Shown here: positions 23,165 to 62,283 of the stretch, piece by piece
Layout of the letters: each line of letters opens with the position of its first letter
How positions within the stretch are numbered: the stretch's first letter is position 1
Sequence record: NC_061445.1
Reading direction: 5' to 3' (one strand)
Length of the DNA: 64,000 bases
Made by a program: the position numbers and the translations under genes
The notes under the pieces: generated by a model
Database searches by the model: none
Told to the model about the DNA's origin: nothing
The model's input: only the letters and a program-made list of their open reading frames with translations

Positions 23165-24187
23165 TTACAGAGCTTTAACGGCGTCGTAGAACGCTGCGTA
23201 AGCATCGCTGTAGAGCGTAAAGTTGCCCAGCTGTTTGAATGCAGATTTAGGCAGATCGCTTGGAGCACCAGCAGTCGGATTGTACTTCGCAACAGTGAAT
23301 GCGCCACGGCCACGAGCTTGCTTAATCTCACCAATCATTCCACCGGACGGACCAAGAACAATACCAATCTTCTTGGTTTCGCTCATGACGAAGATACAAT
23401 CTTCTTCCCCGCCCATATTGGCAACAGAAGCAGTTACGCTCTTATTAGGTGCAGGCAGCTTCATCAGCTTGAATAGAGCCTTGACGTTTTCACCTTCTCC
23501 GCCACGCATGAGGGCATTGTAGAGATTGTCATAGGACTCAGAGCGAGCCTGATTACGCGCAACAGTCTTAGCGCCAGGAGTGCCGCCAGTCTGTTTCTGA
23601 TTCGGACTTTGCGTCCACGTCAGACCTTCATCCAGGCAGTTCTGGCCGGTCATCGCTTCCTGAATGATCACACGCTTGTCTTTGCCTGTCTCAATATTCT
23701 TATCAGCTTCGGCCTTAGTTTTGTACGGGCCTTTGATGATAGTGTCGTTGGCGTGACGAGTGTGATCGACAACGTACCACTTGTTGCGTTCGATCTTACC
23801 GTTCGCATCTACCGTTTTAGCACTTACCGGACGTGACGTTTTAGCAGGAGCGTCTTGTCGAATAGCTACAGGCTTGATCTTGATTGCACGAAGACCGTTG
23901 ATTGTAGCCACCAGCGTTTTGGCTTTGTACAGGTTCTTCATCGCAGTGACAAGATTCTTGCCTGCAGCTTTCTTGGCCAGTGCGGTAGTAGCATCGGCAT
24001 CGTTCAGCAGGTCGAGAACAGCGGCCAGCTTTGCAGTGTCCAGCTCTTTGATCTTAACCAGCTCATCGATCTTCTTAACGATAAGTTTTGCGTTCTTACC
24101 GAAGAGAATCTCGGCATTAGCCAGTTGCTTTTTGTTAGCAGCGGAGATTGATACCACCGTGCCTGAATCAAGGGTAATGTCGAACAT
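23165..24187 (-). CDS. Basic Lys/Ala-rich putative internal virion protein (340 aa)
   Basis: High K/A content; N-terminal VVSISA motif. Confidence 0.6.
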   Translation of the reverse strand: MFDITLDSGTVVSISAANKKQLANAEILFGKNAKLIVKKIDELVKIKELDTAKLAAVLDLLNDADATTALAKKAAGKNLVTAMKNLYKAKTLVATINGLRAIKIKPVAIRQDAPAKTSRPVSAKTVDANGKIERNKWYVVDHTRHANDTIIKGPYKTKAEADKNIETGKDKRVIIQEAMTGQNCLDEGLTWTQSPNQKQTGGTPGAKTVARNQARSESYDNLYNALMRGGEGENVKALFKLMKLPAPNKSVTASVANMGGEEDCIFVMSETKKIGIVLGPSGGMIGEIKQARGRGAFTVAKYNPTAGAPSDLPKSAFKQLGNFTLYSDAYAAFYDAVKAL

Positions 24188-24196
24188 TGTCGTTCC

Positions 24197-24742
24197 TTAT
24201 CGTTTCTTGGTCCAGTTGTTCTGCGGCTTAGGCTGCTCGACAGTCTCAGGCGAAGTGTTCTCCTCAGAGATTTCTTCTTCCTCGTCTTCGTCTTCAACCT
24301 CATCAGCCGCAGGCTCAGGAGCCTGATTGGTATTGAGTACGGACGCTGCGATAGGTGCTTGTGCTACAGTGTTTACAGTAGCGACAGGTTCAGCAGCAGC
24401 CGCTTCACGCGCTTTGGCGACTTCACCAACAGCGTGTTCGTGCACCTTATCAGTAGTAAGCAGAGCGCCTTTCTCTTTTAAAATAGCATCTGCTTTCTCT
24501 TGATCCCACTGGTCCCACAGGATATCAAGACCCTTGAATGCGTAGTTCATGCCTTTCGGCAGCTTGCCACGGCCATTGAAAGGCAGACCGTTTGAAGGAG
24601 TAGCTGGCTCGAACTCGTCCATCATCTCCCACTTACGTTTTGCTTCAATGCACTTCGGTCCCCACACACCGTCACACTGACCGTCGTACAGACCGAGCAG
24701 AGTCATGATGACTTGGAGCTTCTGATAGAATTTGTTCAGCAT
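24197..24742 (-). CDS. Peptidoglycan-binding-domain protein (181 aa) with acidic low-complexity tail
   Basis: LLGLYDGQCDGVWGPKCIEA matches the PG_binding_1 G.Y.G..DG.WGP pattern. Confidence 0.6.
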   Translation of the reverse strand: MLNKFYQKLQVIMTLLGLYDGQCDGVWGPKCIEAKRKWEMMDEFEPATPSNGLPFNGRGKLPKGMNYAFKGLDILWDQWDQEKADAILKEKGALLTTDKVHEHAVGEVAKAREAAAAEPVATVNTVAQAPIAASVLNTNQAPEPAADEVEDEDEEEEISEENTSPETVEQPKPQNNWTKKR

Positions 24743-24758
24743 AGCGAGTCCTCTTACG

Positions 24759-24780
24759 AAAGGAGGGGCCGAAGCCCCTT
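24759..24780 (-). terminator. UUCG hairpin with weak U-tract after the SNF2 gene
   Basis: AGGGGC-TTCG-GCCCCT then CCTTT. Confidence 0.5.
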
Positions 24781-24785
24781 ACCTT

Positions 24786-27700: not shown

Positions 27701-30632
27701 CGAGCAGCACGTAGCTGAAACGGAAGCGGTTAACGAACTCTACAGCACCACGCACACGAACACGCACACCGCCGATATCAACGTTGAACGTACCAGTTTG
27801 CAGGAAGCTCAGACCGACGATATAGATCGTGTTACGAGGAGCCTGAGAGATCACATCATACATGCGCTCCTCGCCCCAGGTGTTCACAGTGTCAGCAGTG
27901 ATTGGCACTGCGTTCCAACCGTCAACGATCTTATGCAGGTCGTCACACCAGTTCGCTACGAGGTTCGACGGACAGATGATCAGAGGACGAATAGTCTCTT
28001 CACCCAAGTCGTCAAGCTCTTTGATGAGAGCAGCGATATCGGACAGACCGATAATCGTCTTACCACCACCAGGCGCGATAAAGATTGTGGCAAAGCGTGG
28101 ACGACGACGGAGCGTCTTGTGCGCTTCAACCTGATGCGGCAGTAACGCTGCACCGTCTTTCAGGCCAGGGATACGGATATCGTCAATCGTGATACCGCTA
28201 TCTGGTTTCAGTCGCTCAATCTCATTCTCGGCCGATTCGAAAATCTCAAGAGACTTAGGAATCACATCGCTGTACATCGTAGCGAACGGCAGGATGATTT
28301 GTTGCAGACGTCCAGACCCAGGCGCTTGGTCGCTGTCAATCAGAGAGCTAAACAGCTTCTTACGATCAGCAGTCACCAGAGAGTTTGCCATTTCACGATA
28401 GAGCGCACCACCGAAGTAGTTGTTCAGTCGTGCCATGTCAGACAGCTTGGACTTCTCACCCATCACGAAGTAGTGCGTGTGGTTAGGCAGAGACTCGGTC
28501 GCAGCAGTGATGCTACCCATCTCATTCAGAGAAGTCATGATCAGGTTCGAACCACGCAGACCAGCAGCGTCATTCAGCACACGAAGCATGATGCGCAGCA
28601 TAGTCAGAGCAGGGCGCTCGTTCGACATATCAGGCACAGAGAAGTCGTTGCCGATCAGGTTCTCATACAGACCATTGTCCATAGAGCTTTCAGACAGGGA
28701 AGCATTCTCTGCATCCATGCCGACAGCTTTACGTGCGTTCTCTACCAGAGTTTTCAGATCAGGAACTTGTTTGCTCTTGAGCATAAACTCGTAGGTCTGA
28801 CACGTCTGGGCGATGATGTTAACCAGCTCAGGCAGATTAGAGCCTTCTGGGGAGTTGAACTTGATTGTGGATTCGCTCACACTCTCAACCAACTTGCCAC
28901 TGCCGGACTCTACCTTAGCAGCTTCGACCATCGTATCGAACGAGGTACGATACAGCGCCATACCGCCAGATGCCTGATTGTGATAGATGTTGCCAATCAC
29001 GTTCGACACAGAACGGAAGTTAGGTGCTTCACCCGGCTCTGCGAAGTCGTAACCCAGAGCATCTGCTACGTCCAGCGAAGTCGGTGCTTTCATACCAACA
29101 GTACGCGTTTCGTTAACAGACAGGCCACCGCCGTTTGACGTGTTAACCACCAGCGCAAAGTCAGGGTCGATGCCGATACACACATCACTGAAACGCGTCA
29201 GTGATTTAGCTTTCGCCTGCACTTCACGGTCGTAATCGAGATTACCGTTCTGGATAGCGAACATGTTGGTACGCAGGGTATCATGCTCGGTAGACAGCGG
29301 GATGCCTTTTTCGAACAGGTCTTCAAGCACACCGTTCAGGCTAGTCTCGTATGTCTTAACCATGTCAACGTCGATATCTTCACGACGAGGCAGCACAGCC
29401 ATAGTGCCGTTCGGCATGATGGTCATACCGTGCTCATCGGCCACAACATCGTTCACCACGTAGTTGAATTTCTCACGCAGCTTTTTCAGCTCAGGCAGAG
29501 AAGTGGCAGACGTGACGTAGCGCGGGATACGAGCAGCACGAGTGATACCGGTACGAGTAGAGTTAGCAACACGGAAGTAATAGCTCGCCCAACCCTGGAA
29601 CCAACGATACAGACACATGGTCTGAGTCGCAGCGCCCTGAGAGATGTACTCAACCATTTCTTTCTCGAAGTTAACGATCAGACCACCTTCGACGCGGACG
29701 TCAGTGGCAAGCGCTACTTCATTGAAATCAACAGGAGTGTCGTGGCTGATCTTCATCGCTTGAATCTTGCGGTCGATCATCGCTTTGCCCGGAATCGAGC
29801 GAATGCCGATGGTCATGAAGTCGCCCAGACCGTCTACTACCTGCTTGTCGAGATTGCGGAACAGGTCGATATCCAGATTGTGCATCGACGGGTGGATAGA
29901 GCGCAGTGCTGCGTTGTACACAGTCCAGTCTTTATCGAGTGGGATGCGAACCATCTTGGTATCGAACACGTTGCTGTTATTGCGCTCAACGCCGAAGATA
30001 TCTTTGTACATGGTCTTCGCCATGCGAATCGCGGCTTGTGCAATATCAGCGCTGTACGTTTGCAGGTTAGCGCGTTCGAACGTACCATCGTTGTCAACAC
30101 GAGGACGGTCGCTACCCTGATTGTTCAGGATGTTGAAGTTACCGTTTGAAGCCAGCGGGCTAGTCGGGCACGGAGTACCAGACATGATGATATCTTTACC
30201 GCCAGGGAAACGTGTGGAGTTTTCGACGATAGCGCCAGAAGATGCAGACAGATGCTCAGCCAGCGAGGACTTAATCTCACGCGTTAGCTTGCTATCGTTC
30301 AACATCACATTGATCTTCAACGTCGCGGCTTCGATGTTGTTCTTGATACGCTTGGTGAAGTCGTCAGGAGAGACTTCCAGCATGTCTTCGAACTCAGCAC
30401 CGTTAGTCACGATGTAGTTGATCAGGTCGAATGCGGCATAGATTCGAGCGACGGTAGATGCGGTGAACACTGCAAGGGTTTCGTAGTTGCGACGAGACTT
30501 CCCTGTAGCGTACATCTTCGACATTTTACCATCGAACTCGGGGGGCAACGGACGGATAGCAAGCGCCTGACTAAAGCTGTCGGCAATTTGCTGCGTCGCG
30601 GTGGCTGACGTACTGATCACTTGATTCATCAT
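24786..30632 (-). CDS. Giant SNF2-family helicase/ATPase (1948 aa)
   Basis: LLPHQ, APGGGKT, LIICPSNLVANW, LDESHKVKN, ATGT, SEGHNMQ, PWSP..YDQSTARIFR; ~800-aa unassigned N-terminus and ~450-aa C-terminus. Confidence 0.85.
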   Translation of the reverse strand: MMNQVISTSATATQQIADSFSQALAIRPLPPEFDGKMSKMYATGKSRRNYETLAVFTASTVARIYAAFDLINYIVTNGAEFEDMLEVSPDDFTKRIKNNIEAATLKINVMLNDSKLTREIKSSLAEHLSASSGAIVENSTRFPGGKDIIMSGTPCPTSPLASNGNFNILNNQGSDRPRVDNDGTFERANLQTYSADIAQAAIRMAKTMYKDIFGVERNNSNVFDTKMVRIPLDKDWTVYNAALRSIHPSMHNLDIDLFRNLDKQVVDGLGDFMTIGIRSIPGKAMIDRKIQAMKISHDTPVDFNEVALATDVRVEGGLIVNFEKEMVEYISQGAATQTMCLYRWFQGWASYYFRVANSTRTGITRAARIPRYVTSATSLPELKKLREKFNYVVNDVVADEHGMTIMPNGTMAVLPRREDIDVDMVKTYETSLNGVLEDLFEKGIPLSTEHDTLRTNMFAIQNGNLDYDREVQAKAKSLTRFSDVCIGIDPDFALVVNTSNGGGLSVNETRTVGMKAPTSLDVADALGYDFAEPGEAPNFRSVSNVIGNIYHNQASGGMALYRTSFDTMVEAAKVESGSGKLVESVSESTIKFNSPEGSNLPELVNIIAQTCQTYEFMLKSKQVPDLKTLVENARKAVGMDAENASLSESSMDNGLYENLIGNDFSVPDMSNERPALTMLRIMLRVLNDAAGLRGSNLIMTSLNEMGSITAATESLPNHTHYFVMGEKSKLSDMARLNNYFGGALYREMANSLVTADRKKLFSSLIDSDQAPGSGRLQQIILPFATMYSDVIPKSLEIFESAENEIERLKPDSGITIDDIRIPGLKDGAALLPHQVEAHKTLRRRPRFATIFIAPGGGKTIIGLSDIAALIKELDDLGEETIRPLIICPSNLVANWCDDLHKIVDGWNAVPITADTVNTWGEERMYDVISQAPRNTIYIVGLSFLQTGTFNVDIGGVRVRVRGAVEFVNRFRFSYVLLDESHKVKNFSGGQAGSQVHFNTKAVFTAPSVRYARIATGTLVTDRVRDIVGQAALMTPAMFGDSLDVAYDGAKDDIEMIRRAHSRMANHTAFISFKRKHWAFMLPNPIDTFIQVEIDDPSVPNSALHQEVYNAMYAEVLEKLDEAARNAKKSKSSDDEDDETGGGDNENATDIDEDDIEEGDDLGALLAGNADLNMYFQRMEMMLTDPMGDDVARLTFEAAGVNNFVSAKVLTIIDRIKKHFEVQPERDIMVKEQQIFEWKPGVQPRELDIAVYNGQKYLARKQSEEFQRQDLPPSMTPPPDDPDYWKPEVQGKLIVFTRYVRAANAIYNALPANYKKVAVVYHGEVGKLGQNKDANLDAFKTDPNVQILIANEQAISEGHNMQMGSRIIRCDTPWSPGTYDQSTARIFRPDVAAAKLDENGKPGDMAREVVFIDWVMTNKTLEVGKVARLMWKTLEKTRFDEKGNKRYEALDQYKLDPIKMSPSLLLDNNTMKDFEPYFLAKRDLNEIESQEFQEMRRTTVAAMQALPSTPALNDFRVMEQTPFVANQKIPDRHGWGLERILDWARNRNFASGENLKDSLNRAPVVTEYGNGLIVSVTARMVDGKLRADSPISTVRVRLAGTGETVSIPATKVHIATKVDKADLKRFFEQRKPWANEKDRKRANAEANRVEVEDTVLDETQTADTKETEKKVEAQARKAARVAQRKQNKEEGKPINEGVEEAAKKVRRRKAADLPPLANTTTRMKPGAKAVAEATGSDMALELTPTVYNGFVALYADATDPDAKALKEFDFVEFGDYVYYDCAYYADFEALLDFIEVKKKLSFDRMSEKRLEFVLDFFDESTPRMGFNVKLATKGQEQLPKFFLVKHKSASDKNHIKAYPMVMEDRLRIMFDLKTNPKMKRFVGTKIPNTRKFGTFDQAPGMWIGFVKNVATAKSRINKIVKAGYTITNIKRVTTALDKLKLTMSKNKSV

Positions 30633-31123
30633 TCACCCGATTTAATGTAGTTGTCAATCACGGACTGCCACACCGTTGGAACTGGTAGGCGACGGTCCGC
30701 AGCGATATCTGAAAGCACGACAGCCAGCGCATAAGCGCGAAGCGGAGCGAGACCCTCAAACTTATCACGCGTAAACACAGACATGAGTTGGTCATTAGTC
30801 AGTGTCTGGTATTGCGCACGATACTCTGAAAGGTACTGGCCATACTTGCCGTCGTCAACTGGCGTAGTGTCCGGAATGCTCTGGACATACAGCAGCGCTT
30901 TCCCAAGTGCATCCATAATCAGAAGCAAATCTGCTTGATCATACGGAGTGATATCAGGCACGTTGGAGCGACCCATCAATTCGAGAACTGATTGAGGCAA
31001 CTGGATAGGCTCTCGTTCAGCCGAGAGGGACTTCATTACACCACCAGCAGCTCCTGCGTATGACTTATCGCTACACGCAAGTTCCGACAGTAGAGTATGA
31101 AGACGCGTGTTTACGTCATTCAC
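30629..31123 (-). CDS. Hypothetical protein (164 aa)
   Basis: GTG start with AGGAG RBS; ATGA overlap with SNF2. Confidence 0.65.
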   Translation of the reverse strand: MNDVNTRLHTLLSELACSDKSYAGAAGGVMKSLSAEREPIQLPQSVLELMGRSNVPDITPYDQADLLLIMDALGKALLYVQSIPDTTPVDDGKYGQYLSEYRAQYQTLTNDQLMSVFTRDKFEGLAPLRAYALAVVLSDIAADRRLPVPTVWQSVIDNYIKSGE

Positions 31124-33192: not shown

Positions 33193-33999
33193 TTAGAAGC
33201 TATGACCTTTGATGATCGTTGCCAGCTTGTCGTAGTATTCAGGGCTGTAGCGGAATACTTGTTTGTAGTAGTCCAGCAGCTTAGGAACGTCTACTCCAGC
33301 GGCAGCAGATACTGAATCAACCTGAGGGAAGTGCTTGTCGTCCAGCTCATCGCCAGACAGCACAGCTACCATGCTCATGGAGCTGATTTGCTCTTCCTGA
33401 CCCTGCTCGTCAACAACGAGGAAGGTGTTGTCGTCAGTCACGGCAGCAGCAACGAAACCAACTTTCAGTTCACCGCTGTTTGACACGAAGCTAATCATGT
33501 CGCCACCAGCAGCGCCCGCCAGTACGGCATTGTGACGTGCGATAGTCGCAGCCAGTTCAGGCATAGAAGTCTGAATGTTTGTAGCAGACGCGCCGGACAC
33601 GGAACGAATCATGTTGATCAGTTCAGAGTTATCGTTCGCATCGCTTTCGCGTACCAGAACATCTTCACCGCTTTCGCTGCGGCGAATAGCCCACATGCGC
33701 TCTGACTTGTCCATGTACATGTTCTTGGACAGCGCCTGGAACTCGTCACCCATCTGCGACACAGGAACGATATCCTGCATACGGTGCATGACAGTACGGA
33801 TGAAGCTGGTGGTTTTACCCGCGTCCAGAACAGTAGCAGCGCCAGCAACAGGAACGTATTCACGATTGCAGGAAGCGCTCACAACAGCACCGAAGTTGTC
33901 GGCAATGTTCTCGCCGTGAGCGTGTGTAACTTGCACGATGGCCACGCTCTGGTTGTCGTTGAGCTGGTCAATCTGTTTGATGAAAGCCTTCATTGTCAT
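33193..33999 (-). CDS. Putative virion protein (268 aa)
   Basis: AGGAG RBS; CTAATTT motif upstream; several internal S-x-S-A/G sites. Confidence 0.6.
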   Translation of the reverse strand: MTMKAFIKQIDQLNDNQSVAIVQVTHAHGENIADNFGAVVSASCNREYVPVAGAATVLDAGKTTSFIRTVMHRMQDIVPVSQMGDEFQALSKNMYMDKSERMWAIRRSESGEDVLVRESDANDNSELINMIRSVSGASATNIQTSMPELAATIARHNAVLAGAAGGDMISFVSNSGELKVGFVAAAVTDDNTFLVVDEQGQEEQISSMSMVAVLSGDELDDKHFPQVDSVSAAAGVDVPKLLDYYKQVFRYSPEYYDKLATIIKGHSF

Positions 34000-36312: not shown

Positions 36313-37595
36313 TACTTAACCGATTGCTTGAGCAGTCGTTTCTGCGCAGGGCTGAGACCCATGACTTCGGCAATGTCGTCGATTTTCTTCAACGTCAGTA
36401 CGCCTTTCGCAGTGCCGCCGCTACCGGTCAGGGAGACCTTAACGAACTCACGTCCGCTACGACCATTGACCATCTGGTGAACGATGCTGTTCTTACCGCC
36501 GCGGCCAGCACGAAGCGCAGTCGATGCCATGCCCAGGATTTCGGTAACAGCTTCTTTCTTCTCGGTAGGGCTGAGGCCCGGAGCAAGACGAACATACAGG
36601 CTGTCATTCTGGACACGCACGTTGTCGAAGATTTCTTTCTTACGACCGCGAATGGTGTGCTGTGCATTACCCAGCTGAGTGGTGTCACGCAGGTTCTGAG
36701 TAGAGCGGTTGATTGGCTTACGCTCACTGTAGTTCAGGAAGCCGTCGAGAGCCATCAGGTGGTTGATGGTACGCTTCATCTCAGGAGCAGTTTTAATCTG
36801 ACGACCCATAGGGAAGCTGCCCGGAACTTTCTCGTCAACGAGTGACGTCAGGAAGTTCTCACTGATACCGCTTGCCACTGCGATAGTGGTAGACAGCACC
36901 AGAGCATAGTTCGGGTAGTGCAGACCATCAGAGTTTACGAAGTTGTCGATAAACACATAGGTCTGGAAGCAGATAGGGTCGGTGCCTGACGCGATGAATG
37001 TACGAGTACGAATCTTCGAATAGTCTTCTTTATTCAGAATCTTCGACAGGTAGTTAGCGATAGTCGCAGCCAGCTTGGTGTGTTCTTTCGGAGCGCCGTT
37101 CTTAACGTCGATGCTCATCAGTTTAACCAATTTGGTCTGCTGGTCTTTCGCTTGCGTGATGACGTTCAGCAGGGACTTTGCAGCAGTGCTCTGATCTTTA
37201 AATGCGCTGAAAGTCTTGCTGCTAAGAATCTGATAGGCGACAGACAGTTCACCAATTGCTTGTGACAGTTGGCTAACCTGCTGGTTATACTGCGCCTTGT
37301 TCTTAACGTCAGTGATATCAATCTTCGACAGGTCGATTACCTGATTCAGGTCGATAGCTTTTGCCTGTTTGCCTTTGATTGAACCTTCAATATCAGACAG
37401 TTCAATCGCTTTGGCACTCATCGACAGGAGTTTTTTCGGGATGACGACAGACGTGGCTTGTGCGATAACTTTATCGAGTACGTTGCGGAACTCTTTCGCT
37501 GTACGCGCACCGCGTAGGGCAGTCATGTTCCCAGAGCTATAGTCAACAGATGCGCTGATACTGCTAACTTCATTGTTTTTGGCAGTCTTAGCCAT
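36312..37595 (-). CDS. Putative internal virion protein (start MAKTAK, 427 aa)
   Basis: GAGG RBS spacing favours ATG 37595; N-terminal VSSISA; CTAATTT upstream. Confidence 0.65.
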   Translation of the reverse strand: MAKTAKNNEVSSISASVDYSSGNMTALRGARTAKEFRNVLDKVIAQATSVVIPKKLLSMSAKAIELSDIEGSIKGKQAKAIDLNQVIDLSKIDITDVKNKAQYNQQVSQLSQAIGELSVAYQILSSKTFSAFKDQSTAAKSLLNVITQAKDQQTKLVKLMSIDVKNGAPKEHTKLAATIANYLSKILNKEDYSKIRTRTFIASGTDPICFQTYVFIDNFVNSDGLHYPNYALVLSTTIAVASGISENFLTSLVDEKVPGSFPMGRQIKTAPEMKRTINHLMALDGFLNYSERKPINRSTQNLRDTTQLGNAQHTIRGRKKEIFDNVRVQNDSLYVRLAPGLSPTEKKEAVTEILGMASTALRAGRGGKNSIVHQMVNGRSGREFVKVSLTGSGGTAKGVLTLKKIDDIAEVMGLSPAQKRLLKQSVK

Positions 37596-39723: not shown

Positions 39724-41610
39724 TTACTTCATTGCCGCAAGACGTTTACGGCGCGCTTTGGCTTCTTCGCGCATGTAGACGACTTCTTCCTTTGCTTGGG
39801 CAAGAGCAAGTTCAAGCGCACGATCACAAATGGCCTCAATGACCTGCTCAGGCGTTTCAGTGGTCTGCACGATCAGGTTGCCGCTACGTGAAAGCATCTC
39901 AGCATTAGGATAGAGTTCCTCTCTAGCCTGTCCGATACACAGTTCGTCGTCAATATCAATACGGTAGATCAGTGTGTGAATCTCCGTCTTCTTGAACTTG
40001 TGTTCCTTACGCTCAAGCATAGCACGTAACTTAGAACGGAAATCTCGGCGTGGGTCAATCGCCACATACTTCCAACCGTCGAATACTTTCTTCGCACACT
40101 CGTAGTAACGATCGTCCACACTGTTCTTGTTGCGCTCAAGACTCACAAGAGTCGCAGCAGGACAGAACGGTGACATGTTGGCGAGTGAACCTATAGCAGG
40201 TGCAAGCACATACTCAGCGCGGTAACTATCGCCAAGTTCGTATTCTTCATCAACATACTTGGTCTGCACGTCACCTGTATTGATACGAGATGCGTTGTAC
40301 CAGAATGCGCTCTCAGGGTTGTTGGTGTATTTGACGAACGACCAAATCTGAGACAGAGCAGCAGGGTACGACCAATTGTGAAGACTGTCTTCTCGGTTGC
40401 TGTAGAAGTCTACGTCACCCAGATTCGCATCAAGGAAGTTCTGACGTCTATCACGCGGTAACTTGTCGATGAAGATAGCCATAGCTCTAGGTCTACTGGA
40501 CATCTTCTCCCACAGCATGAGCGTAGTTGGATCGTCAACACCAAGAGTACCGAAGACGATATCAATGAAGTCACCGAACTCTCGATAGTGTTTGTTGACT
40601 AACAGCTCGGTAGCGCTGCGCACATAGAACTTAGGCTGACCCCACTTCTCACGCGCAAGCGTGACTGCAATGCTCGGGTAGCGCTCGATATAGCTCAGGG
40701 CAACGTCTTCCGCTTCTTTGTTCTTCGTAGTAGTCAGGCGTTTGATGAACGCGTTAACATCACCATGCAGCATCGGGCTTTCGAGGTCATAGTCAAACTC
40801 TTCCCAGCGACGATCAGGATAGAGCTTGCTACTCAGTTCGTACATGCCCTTGCGTTCGGTAGTTGCAATGAACGGATTGATGTGTTCGTCCAACCACTCT
40901 TGCAGCACATGGACAAAAGGCATCTTAGAGTCAGGATAGGCGAACTCCACCAGATACAGAGCATTCACTTTCTCAGACCCGACAAACTTATCAGCAGCTT
41001 TCACCTTTGTGCGTTCGAAGTAAGGCTTGGCAAGACAGCGACCGATAGGCTTGTTAATGTTCTTGTCAGCAGGGTCAATCAGGTACGCAATCAGAGTACC
41101 ACCAGCAATATCCTGTTTGACATACTTCTTGTTCGAACCTGTCTTCACGTTCATGCAGCTAACCCATCCACGGTCTGTGGACATGCCCGCAATATCATAC
41201 GGGTGCATCGAGATGCAGATGAGTTGGCGGTTGCGCGTAGCATTCACAATAGACTTGCGATTCGGATCAGAGTCGAACATCTTTTTCAGTTCGGCATTCT
41301 TCGAAAGCACACGGCCGATTTTAACGATACGACCATGAGAGTCTTTCGCAGTACCTGTCAGGTAATCGACAAGCACCATATCTTTTTCCATCAAAGCGTC
41401 TACGATCTGAATTGGAGGCTTGACGTTCTGCGCAACGTTTTTGATCACGTTGTCGCTCTTTGCGTCGATGTAGATACGCATGGCCTTGTGGCCTTTCTTG
41501 CCGCTAATCTTTTCGAAAAGACTAAGCAACGTGGGATTTGGTTTCCATCCCTTTCTATACTTACGATAGATAGAAGGAGGTAACGCAGAGAGACTTACTT
41601 GAATTTCCAT
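39724..41610 (-). CDS. Hypothetical protein (628 aa) with N-terminal MEIQVSLS; putative internal virion protein
   Basis: Shared N-terminal peptide; ACGCTAATTTT upstream. Confidence 0.7.
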   Translation of the reverse strand: MEIQVSLSALPPSIYRKYRKGWKPNPTLLSLFEKISGKKGHKAMRIYIDAKSDNVIKNVAQNVKPPIQIVDALMEKDMVLVDYLTGTAKDSHGRIVKIGRVLSKNAELKKMFDSDPNRKSIVNATRNRQLICISMHPYDIAGMSTDRGWVSCMNVKTGSNKKYVKQDIAGGTLIAYLIDPADKNINKPIGRCLAKPYFERTKVKAADKFVGSEKVNALYLVEFAYPDSKMPFVHVLQEWLDEHINPFIATTERKGMYELSSKLYPDRRWEEFDYDLESPMLHGDVNAFIKRLTTTKNKEAEDVALSYIERYPSIAVTLAREKWGQPKFYVRSATELLVNKHYREFGDFIDIVFGTLGVDDPTTLMLWEKMSSRPRAMAIFIDKLPRDRRQNFLDANLGDVDFYSNREDSLHNWSYPAALSQIWSFVKYTNNPESAFWYNASRINTGDVQTKYVDEEYELGDSYRAEYVLAPAIGSLANMSPFCPAATLVSLERNKNSVDDRYYECAKKVFDGWKYVAIDPRRDFRSKLRAMLERKEHKFKKTEIHTLIYRIDIDDELCIGQAREELYPNAEMLSRSGNLIVQTTETPEQVIEAICDRALELALAQAKEEVVYMREEAKARRKRLAAMK

Positions 41611-42786: not shown

Positions 42787-43296
42787 TTACTCCTTAATCA
42801 TTTTGACACGCGTGTGGTCGAAGATACCAAACGTTGGTACGTCATGGTGTTCGCCCTCGTTACCCTTGATCGAGTCATATCCCGCGAGACGCAGAATCTT
42901 ACTGATCTCAGTGTATTCATCCCACCACATATACACACGCTTGTGCATACCTTCTGGGATTACTTTTGCCAACGTGTCTAATCGTTTGACAAGGGTCATC
43001 GCCTCATCTTTGCCCACCAGCTTTAACTGAAAGGCTTCCATGATGAGTTGCTTCACTCGTCTATGAATCTCAGCGAACTTTACTTCCGTCCACAGAGAAC
43101 GGAATTTCAGGCTAGCGTACCTGCCTGGGTCCGCATGAAATCGGTAGAGTCTCCCACCTTCTGCATACTTCTCAGCATACGCACGATCTGGTGTTACCCA
43201 AGTCATGTGTTGCTTCTTAGCATGATCGTCAGACCAATCTTCGGCCAGACCGCGATAGTAGATGGTGGGAGAACTCAGACTGACAAAGATCTGCAT
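42787..43296 (-). CDS. ADP-ribosyltransferase-fold-like protein (169 aa) with N-terminal MQIFVSLS
   Basis: IYYRGL, WVTPDRAYAEKYA, GRLYRF, AGYDSIKG, FGIFDHTRVK resemble the ART-PolyVal pattern. Confidence 0.5.
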   Translation of the reverse strand: MQIFVSLSSPTIYYRGLAEDWSDDHAKKQHMTWVTPDRAYAEKYAEGGRLYRFHADPGRYASLKFRSLWTEVKFAEIHRRVKQLIMEAFQLKLVGKDEAMTLVKRLDTLAKVIPEGMHKRVYMWWDEYTEISKILRLAGYDSIKGNEGEHHDVPTFGIFDHTRVKMIKE

Positions 43297-44318
43297 TACG
43301 CGTTATACTGAGTCAGGGGCTTAGGCTTACGCGCTACACGCTTAGTCTTTGCCTCAGGGATTTTCAGATCACGCAACTGCTGTTCGATCTTGTCAACAGT
43401 TGTACCATTACGTTTAGCCATATCAGGCGTAATGCTACCAGCCATAAGCTGACCAGGATTGTCTAAAACGATCTTGCTACCGACACGTCGGAAGTTCCAG
43501 TTATCACGCGCCCACTTCGCACTAAACTGAGTAGTGGTGGCATGTTTGAACACATCCTTAAAAGACTTGTCTACAATAGCAGAGACCGTTTTAGGCTTTT
43601 TTCCGGTAAGCATCTCCTCTCGCTGTTTCTTCAACGCTTTCTTCTTAGCAGGGGAGTACGCGCCTGTGATAGCGTTTTTGTTTTTAGGGAAGAGCTTGGC
43701 TTTCTCACGCTCAATCTGCGCCTTAGTGACAGTCTTTTTCTTCTGACCGGGTTTCACTTTACGATCAGAAGGAGAGCTGCCAGTACCACCAGCCATTTTC
43801 TCCGCCTTAACAAACTTAGGCTTGAACATACCGCGCTTACCGGTGACACCAAACTCAGTCAGCTTGATCGCACGAACGGCTTTCAATGCTTTGGCAAGAC
43901 CTGGGCCTGACAGCACAAGGTCAGATGCAGACAGAGGAAGATTCAAACCACCCAGGTGATGTTTCTTAGCGTGGGCATTTGCTTCTTTGATCAGAGCTTT
44001 CGCCTGCTTAATGTCAGCAGAAGATTTTGCTTTTTCTGTTTTGTAGGTTTCACGCAGAGCAGTCTTACGTGGTCCTTTAGGTGTCTGGCCAGCTTTGGTG
44101 AAAGCAGTAGCTGCTTTAATGCGAGCAGACATACCGCTAATAGCCGCAGTCTTGGCTTTCTTCAAAAGGCCAACAACAGCTTGCAGTTCAGGCTTGGACT
44201 CGGTCGCTACAACCAGAGTAGTAGCCCCGCCAACACGCGCAACTTTGTACGCCTGCGGTTTAATACGCGCAGACTCAGACAGAAGATTGTCTGCGAGATT
44301 GATTTTAATTAGTGCCAT
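43296..44318 (-). CDS. Basic Lys/Ala-rich putative internal virion protein (start corrected to MALIKI, 340 aa)
   Basis: GAGG RBS; K/A-rich; N-terminal LLSESA. Confidence 0.65.
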   Translation of the reverse strand: MALIKINLADNLLSESARIKPQAYKVARVGGATTLVVATESKPELQAVVGLLKKAKTAAISGMSARIKAATAFTKAGQTPKGPRKTALRETYKTEKAKSSADIKQAKALIKEANAHAKKHHLGGLNLPLSASDLVLSGPGLAKALKAVRAIKLTEFGVTGKRGMFKPKFVKAEKMAGGTGSSPSDRKVKPGQKKKTVTKAQIEREKAKLFPKNKNAITGAYSPAKKKALKKQREEMLTGKKPKTVSAIVDKSFKDVFKHATTTQFSAKWARDNWNFRRVGSKIVLDNPGQLMAGSITPDMAKRNGTTVDKIEQQLRDLKIPEAKTKRVARKPKPLTQYNA

Positions 44319-44329: not shown

Positions 44330-44935
44330 TCAAATCAAGGCATGACCGGGAAGGTCGAAGTTTTTACCTGCGGCATAATCACCAAGCGCCTGATACAGCG
44401 AGTTACGCAGCATCTGACCGATGATATCTGAGTTGTGTGCTGACGGGTCCTTGAAAGCAACCTCGATCGCATCAGTGCGCGGATTAACTACGGCATAACG
44501 CAGAGGACAAATCGTCTGCACTTTACACCAAGTGTCCACACGATCTTGTAGTTCAGGCGTCATCTGAATTTTGAAGTCAGACAACTGAAACACAAGACTC
44601 TGAATAGGCGGAGGAGCCGATAAGGAGATGAACTTACCGTTAGCGTTCAGTCTCTCCATAGCCATAGCCGCGTCGTAGATCGACTGATAACCTTCACTGA
44701 CAGTAGTGAGGCCACTCAGTTTAAAGCTATGCGTTGTCAATCCTTTGCGAATCAACTTGGCGATTTTGAGTTCGTAATCACCAGAATCATCTCGCATGAA
44801 AGTGACGAACGCGTAGAAGGCGAAGCCATCGTCTTCACGTAAAAGTCTGTGATCTAATACGCGAAAGCCCACGACACTTTGCAGTGCCTGGGCTGTGATT
44901 TGCGTCGCCTTAGAAAGGGAAACGTAGATTTCCAT
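44330..44935 (-). CDS. Hypothetical protein (201 aa) with N-terminal MEIYVSLS
   Basis: Shared N-terminal peptide; internal FISLSA; TAATG coupling. Confidence 0.7.
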   Translation of the reverse strand: MEIYVSLSKATQITAQALQSVVGFRVLDHRLLREDDGFAFYAFVTFMRDDSGDYELKIAKLIRKGLTTHSFKLSGLTTVSEGYQSIYDAAMAMERLNANGKFISLSAPPPIQSLVFQLSDFKIQMTPELQDRVDTWCKVQTICPLRYAVVNPRTDAIEVAFKDPSAHNSDIIGQMLRNSLYQALGDYAAGKNFDLPGHALI

Positions 44936-45270
44936 TAACGCAGACGAGCGAGAGCCTTTTTAGCTTCTGCCAGAGAAGGCTGAATATCACCTTCATCGTC
45001 GAACTCACCTTCGTAGCGCAGATCGATGCCTGTCACGTTGAAGCCTTCGTCTTCGTCTTTGGTGATGATGCCGAAGCGAGCAGTGTCACCGTTAACGCCG
45101 ATAAAGCGCATGTCGAGAATGTCGTTCGGACCGCTCAGGTCAGACGGCATACCGTCGTCGATGATTGCGAACAGTGCTTTCTTGTCCAGACCCTTAAAGA
45201 AAGCAGCCAGTGCAGGTGCAGCAGATTGGGATTTAACAGCATCGTTCAGTTTCAGTTTGATCAGAGACAT
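44935..45270 (-). CDS. Hypothetical protein (111 aa), putative virion protein
   Basis: GGAG RBS; N-terminal VKSQSA. Confidence 0.65.
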   Translation of the reverse strand: MSLIKLKLNDAVKSQSAAPALAAFFKGLDKKALFAIIDDGMPSDLSGPNDILDMRFIGVNGDTARFGIITKDEDEGFNVTGIDLRYEGEFDDEGDIQPSLAEAKKALARLR

Positions 45271-51296: not shown

Positions 51297-51328
51297 AAAA
51301 GAAGGGCCACCCTTAGGCAGCCCCTTCG
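51297..51328 (-). terminator. Rho-independent terminator
   Basis: GGGGCTGCC-TAAG-GGTGGCCC-TTCTTTT overlapping the 51313 stop. Confidence 0.65.
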
Positions 51329-51831: not shown

Positions 51832-52274
51832 TACCTCCGAGGCTTTTTAGGCTTCTTGATAGCTGACTTAGGTCGCTTGATACGTTGCAGTGCCTTACGC
51901 GCTTCGACAATCTGCTTGGCGACAGTAGCACGACGCTCTTTGATTTGCGCAGTGTCCTGTTCAGTACCTTTCAGTTTATCAAGACGGTTCCACTCTTTGA
52001 CCAAGCGATCAACTACAGCAGCACGGGAAACGCGTTGCTGATTGACACGCACAATGTCCTGCTGGGTCTTAACTGAGTTGCGCGTAGCATTGACTTCATC
52101 ACGCGCTGACGTTACGCCTTTGGTATCGCCCTCAGATTGCTTGTCGTTGAGTTTCTTACGAGCAACAGCAGCACGGCGTTGTGCTCCCTTGAGATCGTCT
52201 TTCGAGTTCTCTAAGGAAACTTTTGTGTCTTCAAGTGGGCTGGTGCGCACACTCAAACTAACTTGAATTTCCAT
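51828..52274 (-). CDS. Basic coiled-coil protein (start corrected to MEIQVSLS, 148 aa)
   Basis: GGAG RBS; the extension in the ORF track runs through a terminator. Confidence 0.7.
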   Translation of the reverse strand: MEIQVSLSVRTSPLEDTKVSLENSKDDLKGAQRRAAVARKKLNDKQSEGDTKGVTSARDEVNATRNSVKTQQDIVRVNQQRVSRAAVVDRLVKEWNRLDKLKGTEQDTAQIKERRATVAKQIVEARKALQRIKRPKSAIKKPKKPRRY

Positions 52275-52404: not shown

Positions 52405-52941
52405 TCATGCTGATTGAAGATCGAGAAGTTCCTCGTCTTCGATATCAGCGGCAGACCACGAACGAAGCACGGAAGCATTGCCGCGATTGCCTGTCAACAT
52501 CATTTTGATTGACGGCTTAGCATCGCGCTCTGCATAGTGATCGATAAGAGCTTTCTCTGTACCGAACCACAGAATGGAGTGACCACCTTTAGGGCAGATT
52601 AAGAACTGCGCCGGACGCTGAGGTACGTTCAACGTCATGTAGAAATCGCCAGCACCTGTAGGGCCCATCATAGGCATAGGCTTCATGACAGCCATGAAGT
52701 CGTTAGCATCTTTCAGACGCTTATCGCCGAGCAACCACAGTGCGCCTTCTTCACCTTCACGCACGGCAGACAATGTGCCTTTACGAGTAGTGATAGATCC
52801 GAATGTGTCTTGATCGAAGCGGGCCAGACCAAAGATAAGTGATGCAAGTTTCTTCAGGTCAGGGGTCGTGCATGGGCTGTCAATTTTCGCCATGCCCTCA
52901 GACCCAAGTGTAATCTTCGAGAGTGAAACAAAGATTTCCAT
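52405..52941 (-). CDS. Hypothetical protein (178 aa) with N-terminal MEIFVSLS
   Basis: Shared N-terminal peptide; ACGCTAATTTT upstream. Confidence 0.7.
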   Translation of the reverse strand: MEIFVSLSKITLGSEGMAKIDSPCTTPDLKKLASLIFGLARFDQDTFGSITTRKGTLSAVREGEEGALWLLGDKRLKDANDFMAVMKPMPMMGPTGAGDFYMTLNVPQRPAQFLICPKGGHSILWFGTEKALIDHYAERDAKPSIKMMLTGNRGNASVLRSWSAADIEDEELLDLQSA

Positions 52942-56052: not shown

Positions 56053-56054
56053 AA

Positions 56055-56627
56055 CTATGCCCTCAGATCAACCAAAATAGATGCAGCCAAATCTCGGAGC
56101 ATATCACGACCAAGAGAAGTATACATCGTTTGTGCTACGACTATGCGCTCTAAGAACAGGCGAGAACTGATAACGTCCTGACCTGTCTTCTGGCGAACGA
56201 ACTCGATGATTGAAGATGGCGGTTGAATGAGGAATGTGAGTATCTCTGCGTCATGCAATACGTTGCCCATCTCAGTAACAGGTTGCATCTCTGTTTCCTG
56301 ATCAAGGATGTATGCGATGACTCGATCCTCATTACCTATATTGCGGTGTAACTTAAAGAACTTTCTAACAGCACTCACGGTGTGCATAAAATCGTATTCC
56401 GGAGAAGTCGGCATACGAAGAAAGAGGGAAGCGAGCAACAGATTTATTTCTAACTGTGGGCCTTGCTCAATGTTCAACATGGCGTGAGAGGTAAGCACGA
56501 CATGCAGCGAGAAGTCACGAGTGTAGAGCGGGTGAGAGGTCGCTGTCTGATCAAAGTAGTCAAGGGCGCGATACAACCCTTGACGCTTCAACAGGTGCTC
56601 TGCTTTGATACGATTGAGGCGGTGCAT
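56055..56627 (-). CDS. Hypothetical protein (190 aa)
   Basis: Helical; faint degenerate HD-like pattern (LHDAEIL). Confidence 0.65.
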   Translation of the reverse strand: MHRLNRIKAEHLLKRQGLYRALDYFDQTATSHPLYTRDFSLHVVLTSHAMLNIEQGPQLEINLLLASLFLRMPTSPEYDFMHTVSAVRKFFKLHRNIGNEDRVIAYILDQETEMQPVTEMGNVLHDAEILTFLIQPPSSIIEFVRQKTGQDVISSRLFLERIVVAQTMYTSLGRDMLRDLAASILVDLRA

Positions 56628-57601: not shown

Positions 57602-57607
57602 AACGGC

Positions 57608-58126: not shown

Positions 58127-58164
58127 AGTAACCTCAATTCTCAGGAGTAGGTTATCGCAGCGAG

Positions 58165-58824: not shown

Positions 58825-58833
58825 AATGGTTCC

Positions 58834-59046: not shown

Positions 59047-59057
59047 AGGTTATTCCT

Positions 59058-59555
59058 CTATACGGGTTTGAGTTTCAGATGCGCCCACGGAAAATCTGCT
59101 TTCTCCAGCAACTCGTTTGCAGTTCCCATCTCGGCGAATTTGTCAAACACATGACCGTACATCGCAGCGAACTCGGCATTCTCCAAGTCTGCTTGCCAAT
59201 CATCATTATCGGTCACATGCTTCTGCCAGATCTCATCGTGCAACTTAGAGAAGGCTTCGACACGCTTAGGGTAAAGCAGCGAAAACAGGTCACGGGCGAA
59301 ACAGATTTTATACTTGTCCTCAGAAGCAAGTTTCTGCAAAGAGGTCAATGGGTATTTACAGTCAAAAGCAGACAGCACCTCGCTATACTGACGAAACAGA
59401 CGCTTATTCTTTACAGCAATCAATTCCATCGGGCAGTCTTTGATTAGACGCATCACCAACTTCTTGGAGCGCAGTTCAGGCCATTCAGATGGAGGCAACA
59501 CAGCGCTTTGGGACAACTTAAACTCAAGTCGAAACAGAACTTCAATAGGGCTCAT
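59058..59555 (-). CDS. Hypothetical protein (165 aa)
   Basis: ATGA overlap with the upstream gene. Confidence 0.65.
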   Translation of the reverse strand: MSPIEVLFRLEFKLSQSAVLPPSEWPELRSKKLVMRLIKDCPMELIAVKNKRLFRQYSEVLSAFDCKYPLTSLQKLASEDKYKICFARDLFSLLYPKRVEAFSKLHDEIWQKHVTDNDDWQADLENAEFAAMYGHVFDKFAEMGTANELLEKADFPWAHLKLKPV

Positions 59556-61129: not shown

Positions 61130-61162
61130 TGCATACTCCAGAAAAAGTGCTTCTTGCTCTTA

Positions 61163-61171
61163 TTTTTACAG
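61163..61171 (-). promoter_or_regulatory. Class-M motif variant CTGTAAAAA
   Basis: 34 nt upstream of the Pol-A-like gene. Confidence 0.45.
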
Positions 61172-61199
61172 TTTTTGGTGCTTTTCGATCTTTTTCTTG

Positions 61200-61480
61200 T
61201 TTTAGGTACAAAACAGAGTCACATCTTAACCCTCACTTCAACACCCCTACCTAAACCTCATGCGGACAAGCGAACCTCAGCCGCCCGCCAGCCGACAAGC
61301 TAATCAACTGGCTTCGCTAGGACAGCTAACAAGCTAGGGCTAAATAGCTGGCTAGATAGGCTTATATTCATCATAGATGCTAGGGCTTTAATGGGTATCT
61401 AAGTGCTAAAAATGAGCCAAGCGCGGATAGTCGTATGACGCTCGCTACGCATGTGAAATCAGCCGTAGACAGCTTAAAAG
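61200..61480. repeat. Non-coding tract with clustered GCTA/AGCT short repeats and a C-rich run; candidate origin
   Basis: About eight GCTA in ~61299-61409, preceded by a G-free C/A-rich run; within a ~490-nt gene-free gap. Confidence 0.45.
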
Positions 61481-61623
61481 CGAAAAATCACCTAACTGAT
61501 TTCGGTCAAAAATACCATGTAACTTTTTTCGAAAATCGCACTCGAAACTGTACGAATCGTGAGATTTTTCTGAAAATAGAGGAAAAACCCGAATAAAATC
61601 AAGGACTTTTCCCCCTTTTTCAG

Positions 61624-62283
61624 TTACTTTTTCTGCGAAACACGCTTCCCGAGCTTGACGCCGATTTGAGTCATGATGCGTTTGACAGTCTCCCCGTCGT
61701 GTTCAGCCATTGCACTCGCTAAACGTTCGCCCTGTTCACGCGATAGCTCTGGCATAATCATTTTCAGCATCTGTGAGCGCATCTTAGCTGATTTAGAGCG
61801 TCCTTTCGAGACAGACACGCCTTCATTCACCTTGAGCGCATTGCTAATCGCTTTCTGCACACGACGATCACCGAAGATATCGCCGAATACGTCACCGAAC
61901 AGGTCTTTGAACGATAGACCACCGCTCATAATGTCGTTTTTCGTGAAACGCACAGGCTGTCCGAGAGCGTTTGTCTTCGTGCAGTGCGTGGATTCAACTT
62001 CGTTCGTTGTGCGTCCACCAGCACGGAAGTTCTCGTCAGGACGTGACGCTTTGCCCTCTGCGCCTGGCTTCGTGTTGCCATTACGCAGATCTGCATCACC
62101 TTCAACAGCTTTATCCGGGTCGAACATGTCGTCCGCTTTTGCGCTTTGATTCGCATCAAACGGAATCTTACCTGTCAGCTTGTTTGGATCTGGCCAACTG
62201 TCCGGGATATCAGACGCAGGTTGTGGTTTGTTCGTCATATCACCGTTAGCTTCGCTGCTCAAGCTGATCTTAATACGTGCCAT
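61624..62283 (-). CDS. Hypothetical protein (219 aa), N-terminus MARIKISLSS; putative internal virion/scaffold protein
   Basis: AGGAG RBS; ISLSS motif; disordered N-half. Confidence 0.7.
   Translation of the reverse strand: MARIKISLSSEANGDMTNKPQPASDIPDSWPDPNKLTGKIPFDANQSAKADDMFDPDKAVEGDADLRNGNTKPGAEGKASRPDENFRAGGRTTNEVESTHCTKTNALGQPVRFTKNDIMSGGLSFKDLFGDVFGDIFGDRRVQKAISNALKVNEGVSVSKGRSKSAKMRSQMLKMIMPELSREQGERLASAMAEHDGETVKRIMTQIGVKLGKRVSQKK

Follow-up and report, generated by a model that had tools for sequence, protein, structure and literature searches.

Bacteriophage T4's IPI, IPII, and IPIII internal proteins are cut after a capsid targeting sequence (CTS), MKTYQEFIAE, which is removed by the head protease gp21 (Mullaney & Black 1996; PMC8442874). 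In the jumbo phages phiKZ and SPN3US, many head and ejection proteins lose N-terminal propeptides at S/A/G-x-E or A-x-E sites, and the protease (phiKZ gp175, SPN3US gp245) processes itself (PMC10052503, PMC5694885). Here, we describe a 64,000-nucleotide stretch of DNA (the window) in which many proteins carry, close to the N terminus, a short leader that ends in S-x-S. The window matches the genome of Erwinia phage pEa_SNUABM_3 (NC_061445.1, Alexandravirus, 266,175 bp) at 100% identity and corresponds to bases 124001-188000 of that record; window coordinates are obtained by subtracting 124,000 from the record coordinate, and nearly all of the window genes lie on the minus strand. The analogy with T4 argues for a CTS-like leader that would be cleavable and would have a small-x-small specificity. 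We consider it likely that S-x-S is the recognition and cut site of a prohead serine protease, gp145, and that the leaders route cargo into the head.

pEa_SNUABM_3 is one of the jumbo myoviruses of the PaBG/Lu11 group, which also includes Alexandra, Yoloswag, Y3, and the Dickeya AD1 and JA phages (PMC7412058). The literature searched gives no account of the motif or the leader for the PaBG/Lu11/Alexandra group, the PaBG paper noting only that processing occurs, and no published cleavage sites for PaBG, Lu11, Y3, Alexandra, or RSL1. The motif was judged against the full set of ∼340 proteins of the genome, and also against the genes for head assembly, all of which are located beyond the window. 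Leaders were compared with those of orthologues in Alexandra, Yoloswag, and JA29, and the number of S-x-S motifs expected in N termini was taken from within-protein shuffles (500 rounds). A further set of 80 head modules was retrieved from IMG/VR with the protease family as the query; 51 of these loci hold both a scaffold and a major capsid protein (MCP).

One form of the leader is an octapeptide, M-E-I-x-V-S-L-S, whose positions 3, 5, and 7 are hydrophobic and alternate with polar or small ones at 2, 6, and 8. The strict pattern M-[EQ]-[ILM]-x-V-[SD]-L-S starts eight proteins of the genome, and a six-frame search of the whole genome with M-[EQ]-[IL]-x-V-[SD]-L-S gave seven matches, all of them true N termini (gp189, gp193, gp195, gp206, gp207, and gp208 in the window, and gp233). 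Further leaders outside the M-[EQ]-[IL] pattern are MEMLVSLS on gp242 and, outside the window, MMIKVSLS|A on the Nudix hydrolase gp122, where the bar marks the predicted cut. An earlier sequence-only reading of the window had named five xVSLS proteins, and we confirm all five on the minus strand, with starts at 41610, 43296, 44935, 52274, and 52941: gp189 (leader MEIQVSLS, 41587..41610; gene 39724-41610, 628 residues; predicted cut S8|A9), gp193 (MQIFVSLS, 43273..43296; gene 42787-43296, 169 residues), gp195 (MEIYVSLS, 44912..44935; gene 44330-44935, 201 residues, with a second S-x-S inside, at residue 104), gp207 (MEIQVSLS, 52251..52274; gene 51828-52274, 148 residues, very basic), and gp208 (MEIFVSLS, 52918..52941; gene 52405-52941, 178 residues). 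To these, gp206 adds a sixth variant, MELTVDLS, with Asp at P3 (51805..51828, minus strand; start 51828, gene 51313-51828, 171 residues). The Alexandra orthologues carry the identical leader on gp206 and gp208, retain (M)QVFVSLS on gp193, and read MEIFVSLA on gp195, where the internal site is YMSQS|S and thus also S-x-S. For gp207, the orthologous leaders are MKILISLS in Alexandra, MEILISLS in Yoloswag, and MQVLISLS in JA29. The octapeptide proteins range from 109 to 628 residues in length and from very basic to very acidic, and Pfam and PHROGs searches of the tagged proteins gave almost no informative match.

The xVSLS proteins are unrelated putative cargo proteins that share an eight-residue leader with the architecture of the T4 CTS, which is likewise an extreme N-terminal peptide of ∼8-10 residues on unrelated proteins and likewise ends in the motif of the head protease, a motif present in the major capsid and scaffold proteins as well. 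Unlike in T4, the sequence is M-E-I-x-V-S-L-S, and Ser or Ala takes the place of Glu at P1. There are also more tagged proteins, including a helicase of 1948 residues, and a second, longer leader class, and both targeting and cleavage are predictions here. The phiKZ and SPN3US systems resemble this one in belonging to jumbo phages and in having a small P3; they differ in their Glu at P1, S-x-E and A-x-E not being enriched in pEa_SNUABM_3 (z = -0.5 and -4.2), and in propeptides that are often tens to hundreds of residues long, compared with a uniform octapeptide here. The architecture is known from the T4 CTS and from the propeptide systems of phiKZ and SPN3US; the proposed small-x-small specificity, the leader sequences, and a protease without recognizable sequence kinship to gp21 set this one apart.

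The motif recurs in the proteins that build the head. In the MCP, gp141, ELVHSVS|S ends at residue 68 of 365, which is 19% of the length, and the phage G gp27 capsid structure (6wkk), the only solved relative, aligns with gp141 from about residue 72 on. For the PaBG MCP, maturation reportedly removes about 20% of the mass (PMC7412058). The acidic, scaffold-like gp143 (679 residues) contains 23 S-x-S motifs where 8.4 are expected (z = 5.4), with four [ED]FDSES repeats. The N terminus of the decoration-like gp142, taken as a control, has no such motif, and hydrophobic-x-E is enriched in no scaffold homologue.

In other lineages, Ser gives way to Ala at many of these sites together. The scaffold homologues of Lu11, PaBG, and HRDY3 are enriched in A-x-A (z = 3.8-4.7) and not in S-x-S, and the corresponding MCP linkers read QVATA|S, QIATA|S, and RAPSA|R. 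Lu11 also has a tandem block of 11 genes that begin with MKIQLAVA, MKIQLALA, MRIQLAVA, or similar. Scaffolds in the 51 IMG/VR loci fall into two classes, one enriched in S-x-S (z = 4.5-6.6) and the other in A-x-A (z = 3.4-6.3), and the scaffold type equals the MCP-linker type in 33 of the 34 loci that could be typed. The leaders of the gp151 family follow the same division, reading M[IV]LS[VE]S|A, LLSLS|A, and FLSQS|A in S-type loci and MNIAIA|A, MIIAIA|A, MNLALA|A, and MFFVSLA|A (A-x-A or S-x-A) in A-type loci. Across lineages, dozens of sites in each genome change together. Since Ala replaces Ser, the motif does not depend on the Ser hydroxyl, which excludes sites of phosphorylation or O-glycosylation. 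The sequence-only reading had proposed a Ser-based specificity for the prohead protease of this lineage; its non-Glu part stands, and Ser as such has to be widened to small-x-small. As judged from the sequences, the specificity would be for Ser or Ala at both P1 and P3, P4 or P5 being hydrophobic.

What we regard as the strongest single argument that the octapeptide is removable, as the CTS is, comes from the gp189 family. The domain at the N terminus of gp189 (∼270 residues, HPYD[IV]AGMST.RGW.SCM) has homologues in distant jumbo phages, and the residues ahead of it differ by lineage. At this junction, the Erwinia and Dickeya phages read MEI.VSLS|ALPPS.YR, Lu11 reads M[KR]IQLA[VT]A|AV..., Ralstonia phage RsoM2USA reads MKTFKQFLNTLME|ALPLS, and Agrobacterium phage Atu_ph07 reads MQYTDLIE|ALKPSEYR. 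The conserved body (AL.PS.YR) begins exactly behind the leader in 113 of 120 homologues. A leader that ends in [S/A]-x-S before the body [AK]L..S.[YA][RK] was found in 62 of the 120, with exactly eight residues in 57 of them; 40 leaders end in hydrophobic-x-E (for example, MITFKDFLEE| and MKIFEILSE|), and nine end in L-[LI]-A. The T4 CTS itself ends in I-A-E, a hydrophobic-x-E form of the gp21 motif, and the E-type leaders of the gp189 family, which stand at the same junction as MEI.VSLS, resemble it. RsoM2USA, whose leader is of the E type, encodes a protease of the T4 gp21 type (PMC8504454). Leaders are thus interchanged at a fixed junction, each lineage's leader ending in residues that fit its own head protease, and the predicted junction in pEa_SNUABM_3 would be S8|A9.

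The domain that follows the leader (residues ∼9-270 of gp189) carries an almost invariant motif and is widespread in jumbo phages and metagenomes (144 matches at E <= 1e-5). It has variable C-terminal fusions and belongs to no Pfam family, and it occurs in three tandem copies in Lu11 and two in JA29.

An alternative is that the leader serves as a shared docking peptide for the scaffold, the portal, a chaperone, or another machine and is not removed, only the S-x-S sites of the MCP and scaffold being cut; the leader would then resemble those sites merely through a beta-strand-like pattern. The octapeptide is indeed conserved as a whole, beyond S-x-S, with its alternating hydrophobic residues at 3, 5, and 7. 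We nevertheless regard this as unlikely, because the leader position in the gp189 family is elsewhere filled by hydrophobic-x-E peptides of the T4 CTS form, which is cleaved in T4 (PMC8442874), and because the last and third-last residues of the leader turn from Ser to Ala where the scaffold and MCP sites are of the A type.

A cleavable leader calls for a head protease, and the sequence-only reading had asked that one be identified. The candidate found is gp145 (record 112041-112820, outside the window), which matches PHROG 18299, "head maturation protease", its sole assignment at the sequence level. Its gene family lies just upstream of the scaffold and MCP genes in pEa_SNUABM_3, Lu11, RSL1, and the 51 IMG/VR loci. 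The protein starts MDQSIRSES|FD, and [S/A]-x-[S/A]|F is retained at that position across about 60 relatives, the signature that an autoprocessing site would be expected to leave. An AlphaFold2 model built from 48 homologues (pLDDT 86, pTM 0.83) has the fold of a prohead serine protease: its top matches in the PDB are T4 gp21 (5jbl; probability 0.84, E = 0.03, TM score 0.49 on the target) and the protease of Kaposi's sarcoma-associated herpesvirus (KSHV), and a search of BFVD gave 98 matches at E <= 1e-3, phage G gp19 among them, of which many carry the annotation prohead serine protease, COG3740 head maturation protease, or XkdF. His124 and Ser181 are invariant in the 48 homologues, in the order His...Ser. 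A PDB profile search with gp145 gave no sequence match, and no gp21 homologue was found in the pEa_SNUABM_3 genome. Right behind the putative catalytic Ser181, in residues ∼185-210, there is a conserved zinc-ribbon-like cluster (C191, C194, C206, H208); we know of no other prohead protease with such an insert.

The fold comparisons place gp145 near two further systems. The HK97-type prohead serine proteases (COG3740/MEROPS S78, XkdF) are its best annotated BFVD fold matches and share the gene order protease, scaffold, MCP; unlike them, gp145 has no Pfam or NCBIfam match and has the Cys/His zinc-ribbon insert. The HK97 protease is targeted via its own C terminus, and to our knowledge, there are no cargo leaders in HK97. 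In herpesviruses, the proteases of KSHV and Epstein-Barr virus are among the top PDB fold matches of gp145. The assemblin consensus is (V/L/I)-x-A|S, with a small P1 and a hydrophobic residue upstream, and assemblin cuts the scaffold and itself. It differs in being a eukaryotic virus enzyme, in its hydrophobic P3, and in having no N-terminal cargo leader system. The nine gp189 homologues with L-[LI]-A| leaders are nearer to the assemblin rule than the Erwinia phage is.

That another enzyme makes the cuts seems to us quite improbable. Candidates would be the metallopeptidase gp144, the "peptidase" gp214 (window 56627-57601), or a host protease. In favor of gp144 are its HExxH motif, its KMPT-N domain, and its location between the protease and scaffold genes; the PaBG counterpart of gp214 is annotated as a Zn-metalloprotease, and gp145 itself lacks a sequence-family assignment. 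Yet gp144 lies outside the head module in Lu11 and RSL1, where the gp145 family is present, as it is in the 51 IMG/VR loci; gp145 models with the prohead serine protease fold and has an invariant His124 and Ser181; and its N terminus bears the motif, as that of an autoprocessing head protease would. As an observation on gp144 itself (record 110897-112039, outside the window), it is a KMPT-N/SprT-like metallopeptidase with HELAH (PF20294, E = 1.5e-26), and its place between the head protease and scaffold genes is a feature of the Alexandra-like phages.

The N-terminal motif is more than chance or common descent. That the leaders have no common function, and reflect paralogy, a shared translation-initiation or DNA element, or a Ser-rich composition, is very improbable. 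In favor of this reading, the genes lie in clusters (39.7-45.3 and 51.3-52.9 kb), the arrangement expected of tandem paralogues, and S-x-S is a motif of low information. However, all-against-all BLASTP of the octapeptide proteins found no similarity past residues 1-11, and proteins of 109 to 628 residues share the leader only, which rules out paralogy of the xVSLS proteins. Within the leader, Ser is encoded by both AGY and TCN codons, Leu by CTC, CTG, CTT, TTA, or TTG, and Val by GTA, GTC, or GTT, and the upstream DNA is unrelated. Selection therefore acts on the peptide, and a conserved nucleotide-level element at the starts is ruled out. A looser tag pattern that also admits MALIKINL, MSLIKLKL, and MARIKISLS begins 12 of 343 N termini, against three of 2024 internal Met positions (p = 2e-8). 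The recurrence of the motif in the MCP, scaffold, and protease and its covariation across lineages also speak against the absence of a function.

The composition of the proteins does not account for the motif either. In an enrichment check that the sequence-only reading had called for, S-x-S falls within residues 1-19 in 14 of the 47 proteins of the region that this reading had singled out (23165-62283), where 3.0 ± 1.6 are expected (z = 7.1), a count reached in none of the 500 shuffles; in the rest of the genome, the enrichment is weaker, at 34 of 296 proteins against 19.9 expected. S-x-A is likewise enriched in N termini (z = 3.7). Genome-wide, S-x-S was observed 448 times against 364 expected (z = 4.9), and the extended motif [VILFM]-x-S-x-S-[AS] 46 times against 16.4 (z = 7.6). 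The six control motifs were not enriched: S-x-E (295 observed, 303 expected, z = -0.5), A-x-E (336, 414, z = -4.2), S-x-T (361, 346, z = 0.9), T-x-S (374, 342, z = 1.8), S-x-x-S (361, 362, z = -0.05), and SS (385, 366, z = 1.1). The signal is therefore neither Ser clustering or composition nor a motif of the Glu type. The statement that replication enzymes lack an N-terminal motif is roughly true, with GSSES at residues 24-28 of dnaX and KSVSKS at 31-36 of polA as departures that are probably due to chance. Lastly, host signal peptidase I also needs small residues at -1 and -3 and so shares the small-x-small rule (the Lu11 leaders read A-x-A), but it is hardly credible that the leaders represent Sec-type signal peptides for this enzyme, given that they are 8-17 residues long with no hydrophobic core of 10-15 residues and mostly no basic n-region, and that the motif also lies inside the cytoplasmic MCP, scaffold, and protease.

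Taken with the MCP junction, the scaffold, the protease N terminus, the lineage changes, and the gp189 family, these results support the proposal of a non-Glu prohead-protease site on packaged proteins and suggest how a leader of this kind might work. gp145 would bind its substrates as an extended strand. At P1 and P3 it would prefer small residues, which are Ser in this phage and Ala in the Pseudomonas relatives Lu11 and PaBG; P4 or P5 would be hydrophobic, and Ala, Ser, or Lys would be usual at P1′. Its sites would occur in two contexts. In head assembly, they would lie at the delta-domain junction of the MCP, repeatedly in the acidic scaffold, and at the N terminus of the protease; gp145 would trim the delta domain, dice the scaffold, and process itself, and these cuts would drive capsid maturation. 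In the other context, the motif would end a leader, either the eight-residue M-E-I-x-V-S-L-S or a form of 9-17 residues (M-x-L-I-K-I-x-L...S-x-S), on a dozen or more unrelated proteins in each genome. Following the example of the T4 CTS, the leader would take the cargo to the assembling prohead core and then be clipped, gp145 removing it from cargo already brought there, so that the leader could serve as both targeting element and extended recognition site. The mature cargo would stay in the head and be ejected with the DNA; among it would be the SNF2 helicase of 215 kDa, the Nudix hydrolase, and proteins without assigned function, some basic and others acidic. More tentatively, and with rather less confidence, we suggest that the octapeptide may be a portable capsid "zip code", such that acquiring it (or MKIQLAVA in the Lu11 lineage) would get a protein loaded, trimmed, and injected.

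Several observations weigh against cleavage by gp145. The literature searched contains no mass spectrometry or N-terminal sequencing data for pEa_SNUABM_3 or its close relatives, and for this reason we infer, by analogy, cleavage itself, gp145 as its agent, the leader as a head-targeting element, and packaging. gp145 and its family (48 members) match no Pfam (S77/S78/U35) or NCBIfam model, an hhalign comparison with T4 gp21 was negative, gp145 not being detectably related to gp21 in sequence, and the PDB fold matches of the model are weak (E = 0.03). The leader-bearing gp233 and gp242 are encoded on the plus strand near an annotated sigma factor, SSB, and a UvsX-like recombinase, and not among head genes. 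The bare S-x-S is short, and chance would account for ∼3 of the 14 N-terminal matches in that region. Switches of the scaffold type between S and A number only about two on the MCP tree; because there are just two independent contrasts, a sign test cannot reach significance, and with the phylogenetically corrected test powerless, we claim concerted multisite change and not statistical co-evolution. PaBG is mixed, with an A-x-A scaffold but S-L-S on its helicase, which suggests that the enzyme takes either small residue and points to tolerance of both rather than strict co-evolution.

Cleavage of S-x-S leaders by gp145 would extend to a set of longer or less regular N termini, on which the S-x-S sites named by the sequence-only reading differ in credibility. 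That reading had listed six N-terminal peptides, and all six are present on the minus strand at the expected starts. Two belong to the long type. gp194 (gene 43296-44318, 340 residues, Lys-rich) begins with MALIKINLADNLLSES (44271..44318; predicted cut S16|A17), and its Alexandra paralogues begin with MALIKISLGDSVLSES|A and MALIKINLAGAVESVS|A; gp196 (gene 44935-45270, 111 residues) begins with MSLIKLKLNDAVKSQS, followed by A (45223..45270), and its Alexandra counterpart reads MCLIKLNLDEAVKSTS|A. S-x-S|A is retained in both families among the relatives. gp221 (gene 61624-62283, 219 residues) starts MARIKISLS|S (62257..62283) and fits the N-terminal tag pattern. gp176 (gene 23165-24187, 340 residues) carries MFDITLDSGTVVSIS|A (24143..24187), and its S-x-S|A is kept as VVSIS|A in Alexandra, VASTS|A in Yoloswag, and VDSVS|A in JA29. 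gp178, confirmed as an SNF2/Helicase_C protein of 1948 residues (gene 24786-30632), starts MMNQVISTS|A (30606..30632); [IF]-S-T-S| is kept in four phages with varying flanks, and its PaBG homologue, gp202 (E = 1.5e-22), starts MGSLFTLNSLS|AA. PaBG gp202 is the 221-kDa virion band (PMC7412058). The sixth, gp186 (gene 36312-37595, 427 residues), carries MAKTAKNNEVSSIS|A (37554..37595), with S-x-S kept in three of four phages (conserved in Alexandra, NSIS|T in Yoloswag), the exception being AQLS|A in JA29.

Two candidates on the minus strand extend the list. gp179 (gene 30629-31123), which the sequence-only reading did not include, has a candidate propeptide of 34 residues ending VMKSLS|A (31022..31123), and its S-x-S is conserved in position, as ESIS|E in Alexandra, QSIS|A in Yoloswag, and ESVS|A in JA29. 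A weaker candidate is gp218 (gene 59058-59555), with the N terminus MSPIEVLFRLEFKLSQS|A (59505..59555). The three internal copies that had been reported all exist: gp195 has FISLS|A at residue 104, gp198 has FISLS|S at residue 260, and gp183 has VDSVS|A at residue 227. However, the gp198 copy is not conserved in orthologues or paralogues and is probably due to chance, so that we rejected it as a site. gp183 (33193..33993, minus strand) has six internal S-x-S motifs, including VVSAS (39), IRSVS|G (131), and VDSVS|A (227); at sites 39 and 131, small-x-small is kept in Alexandra, Yoloswag, and JA29, and the PaBG homologue is gp197.

The virion status of the leader-bearing proteins comes from PaBG homologues only, those being the giant helicase and gp083. 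PaBG gp083 is a virion protein (PMC7412058 Table 1). It starts MLIKINLLEAVA|A, of the type MLIKINL...AVA|A, and is the A-type counterpart of MALIKINLADNLLSES|A in gp194. As an orthologue of gp194, it was rejected, the LIKINL leader being the sole match; it has a weak local match to gp176 (E = 0.002). A second family with exchanged leaders (gp193, Lu11 gp211, and Atu_ph07 gp381, with the start [IV]Y[YH][RH]G) was dropped because its BLASTP E value was 0.17.

Some of the proteins discussed above have features of their own. gp206 (51313-51828) contains an internal duplication, GLDDVSGPFYEDHYLDNGVRKVF and GLKGVSGPFYADHYMDGGKRKVY, and its Alexandra orthologue has just 94 residues. Outside the window, gp233 (record 194795-195298, MEIYVSLS) and gp242 (record 199075-199404, MEMLVSLS) are extremely acidic and of low complexity. 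gp143 (record 108779-110818, outside the window) is annotated as an "ATPase" in RefSeq and PHROGs and looks like a head scaffold; it is built of two N-terminal Cys4 zinc-ribbon-like segments, an Asp/Glu repeat region of ∼150 residues with [ED]FDSES, and a helical part at the C terminus whose conservation spans PaBG to RSL1, and the "ATPase" annotation is probably wrong. gp182 (32312-33133) has a conserved N terminus, M-[AP]-A-I-S-L-D-D, in each of the four Erwinia and Dickeya phages, and a Lys-rich tract comes after it. The pattern is leader-like with no S-x-S behind it, the next small-x-small candidate being S-F-A or Q-S-A, and it may be a third leader variant.

Other window genes lie near those with leaders. 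gp191 (42220-42585, 121 residues), itself without a leader, sits amid the leader-bearing cluster near the endolysin and has a Tlde1 domain (PF10908, E = 3e-15), an L,D-transpeptidase-like antibacterial effector domain of type VI secretion; its conserved counterparts in Alexandra, Yoloswag, and JA29 carry the annotation DUF2778. gp190 (41670-42179), annotated "GTP-binding domain", matches the YpsA SLOG family PF06908 (E = 1.6e-5), just below the gathering score. gp187 (37770-38420) is Lys/Ala-rich and histone-like (KAPKAKKAKAPKAAKAPK...), has no S-x-S leader, and adjoins an SbcD-like nuclease gene. Its place in the gene order makes it the counterpart of PaBG gp191, a virion protein found in several gel bands, and it may be an internal DNA-binding head protein. 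The family of gp198 (45881-46747) has members of ∼290 residues that begin with MQY[IL], with a conserved N-terminal part of ∼60 residues and a conserved C-terminal "...D[FY]...PGT..." around a hypervariable middle. There is one copy here, two in Yoloswag, and four in Alexandra (11817-12701, 16385-17236, 17652-18518, and 19056-19925 of stretch L008), and it looks like a diversifying paralogue family.

If S-x-S leaders are cleaved as proposed, a large and little-studied set of jumbo phages (PaBG, Lu11, Alexandra, Yoloswag, the Dickeya JA phages, and many metagenomic relatives) would gain its first cleavage rule and its first packaging signal; several of these phages are used as fire blight biocontrol agents. 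A genome sequence would then suffice to forecast the proteins that are borne in the head and enter first, here the 215-kDa SNF2 helicase, the Nudix hydrolase, and about ten proteins without assigned function, and this predicted cargo would be a shortlist for factors of early host takeover and antidefense. The gp189 family, with three leader types on one domain, would be a natural experiment in which a targeting peptide and a protease specificity evolve together. A short, defined leader may also be a handle for loading foreign proteins into large capsids, a use to which the T4 CTS has been put. If the octapeptide is in fact a zip code, scans of N termini would list the fast-turning-over injected arsenal of the PaBG/Lu11/Alexandra jumbo phages, and leader and protease specificity (S, A, and E elsewhere) would be swapped as a unit when cargo genes move. 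Prohead proteases trigger CBASS immunity by cutting bait loops that carry the T4-type L-P-E motif (PMC12991175). A lineage with another protease specificity bears on which immune baits sense which phages, and a small-x-small specificity would alter which of the host's protease-sensing baits detect these phages.

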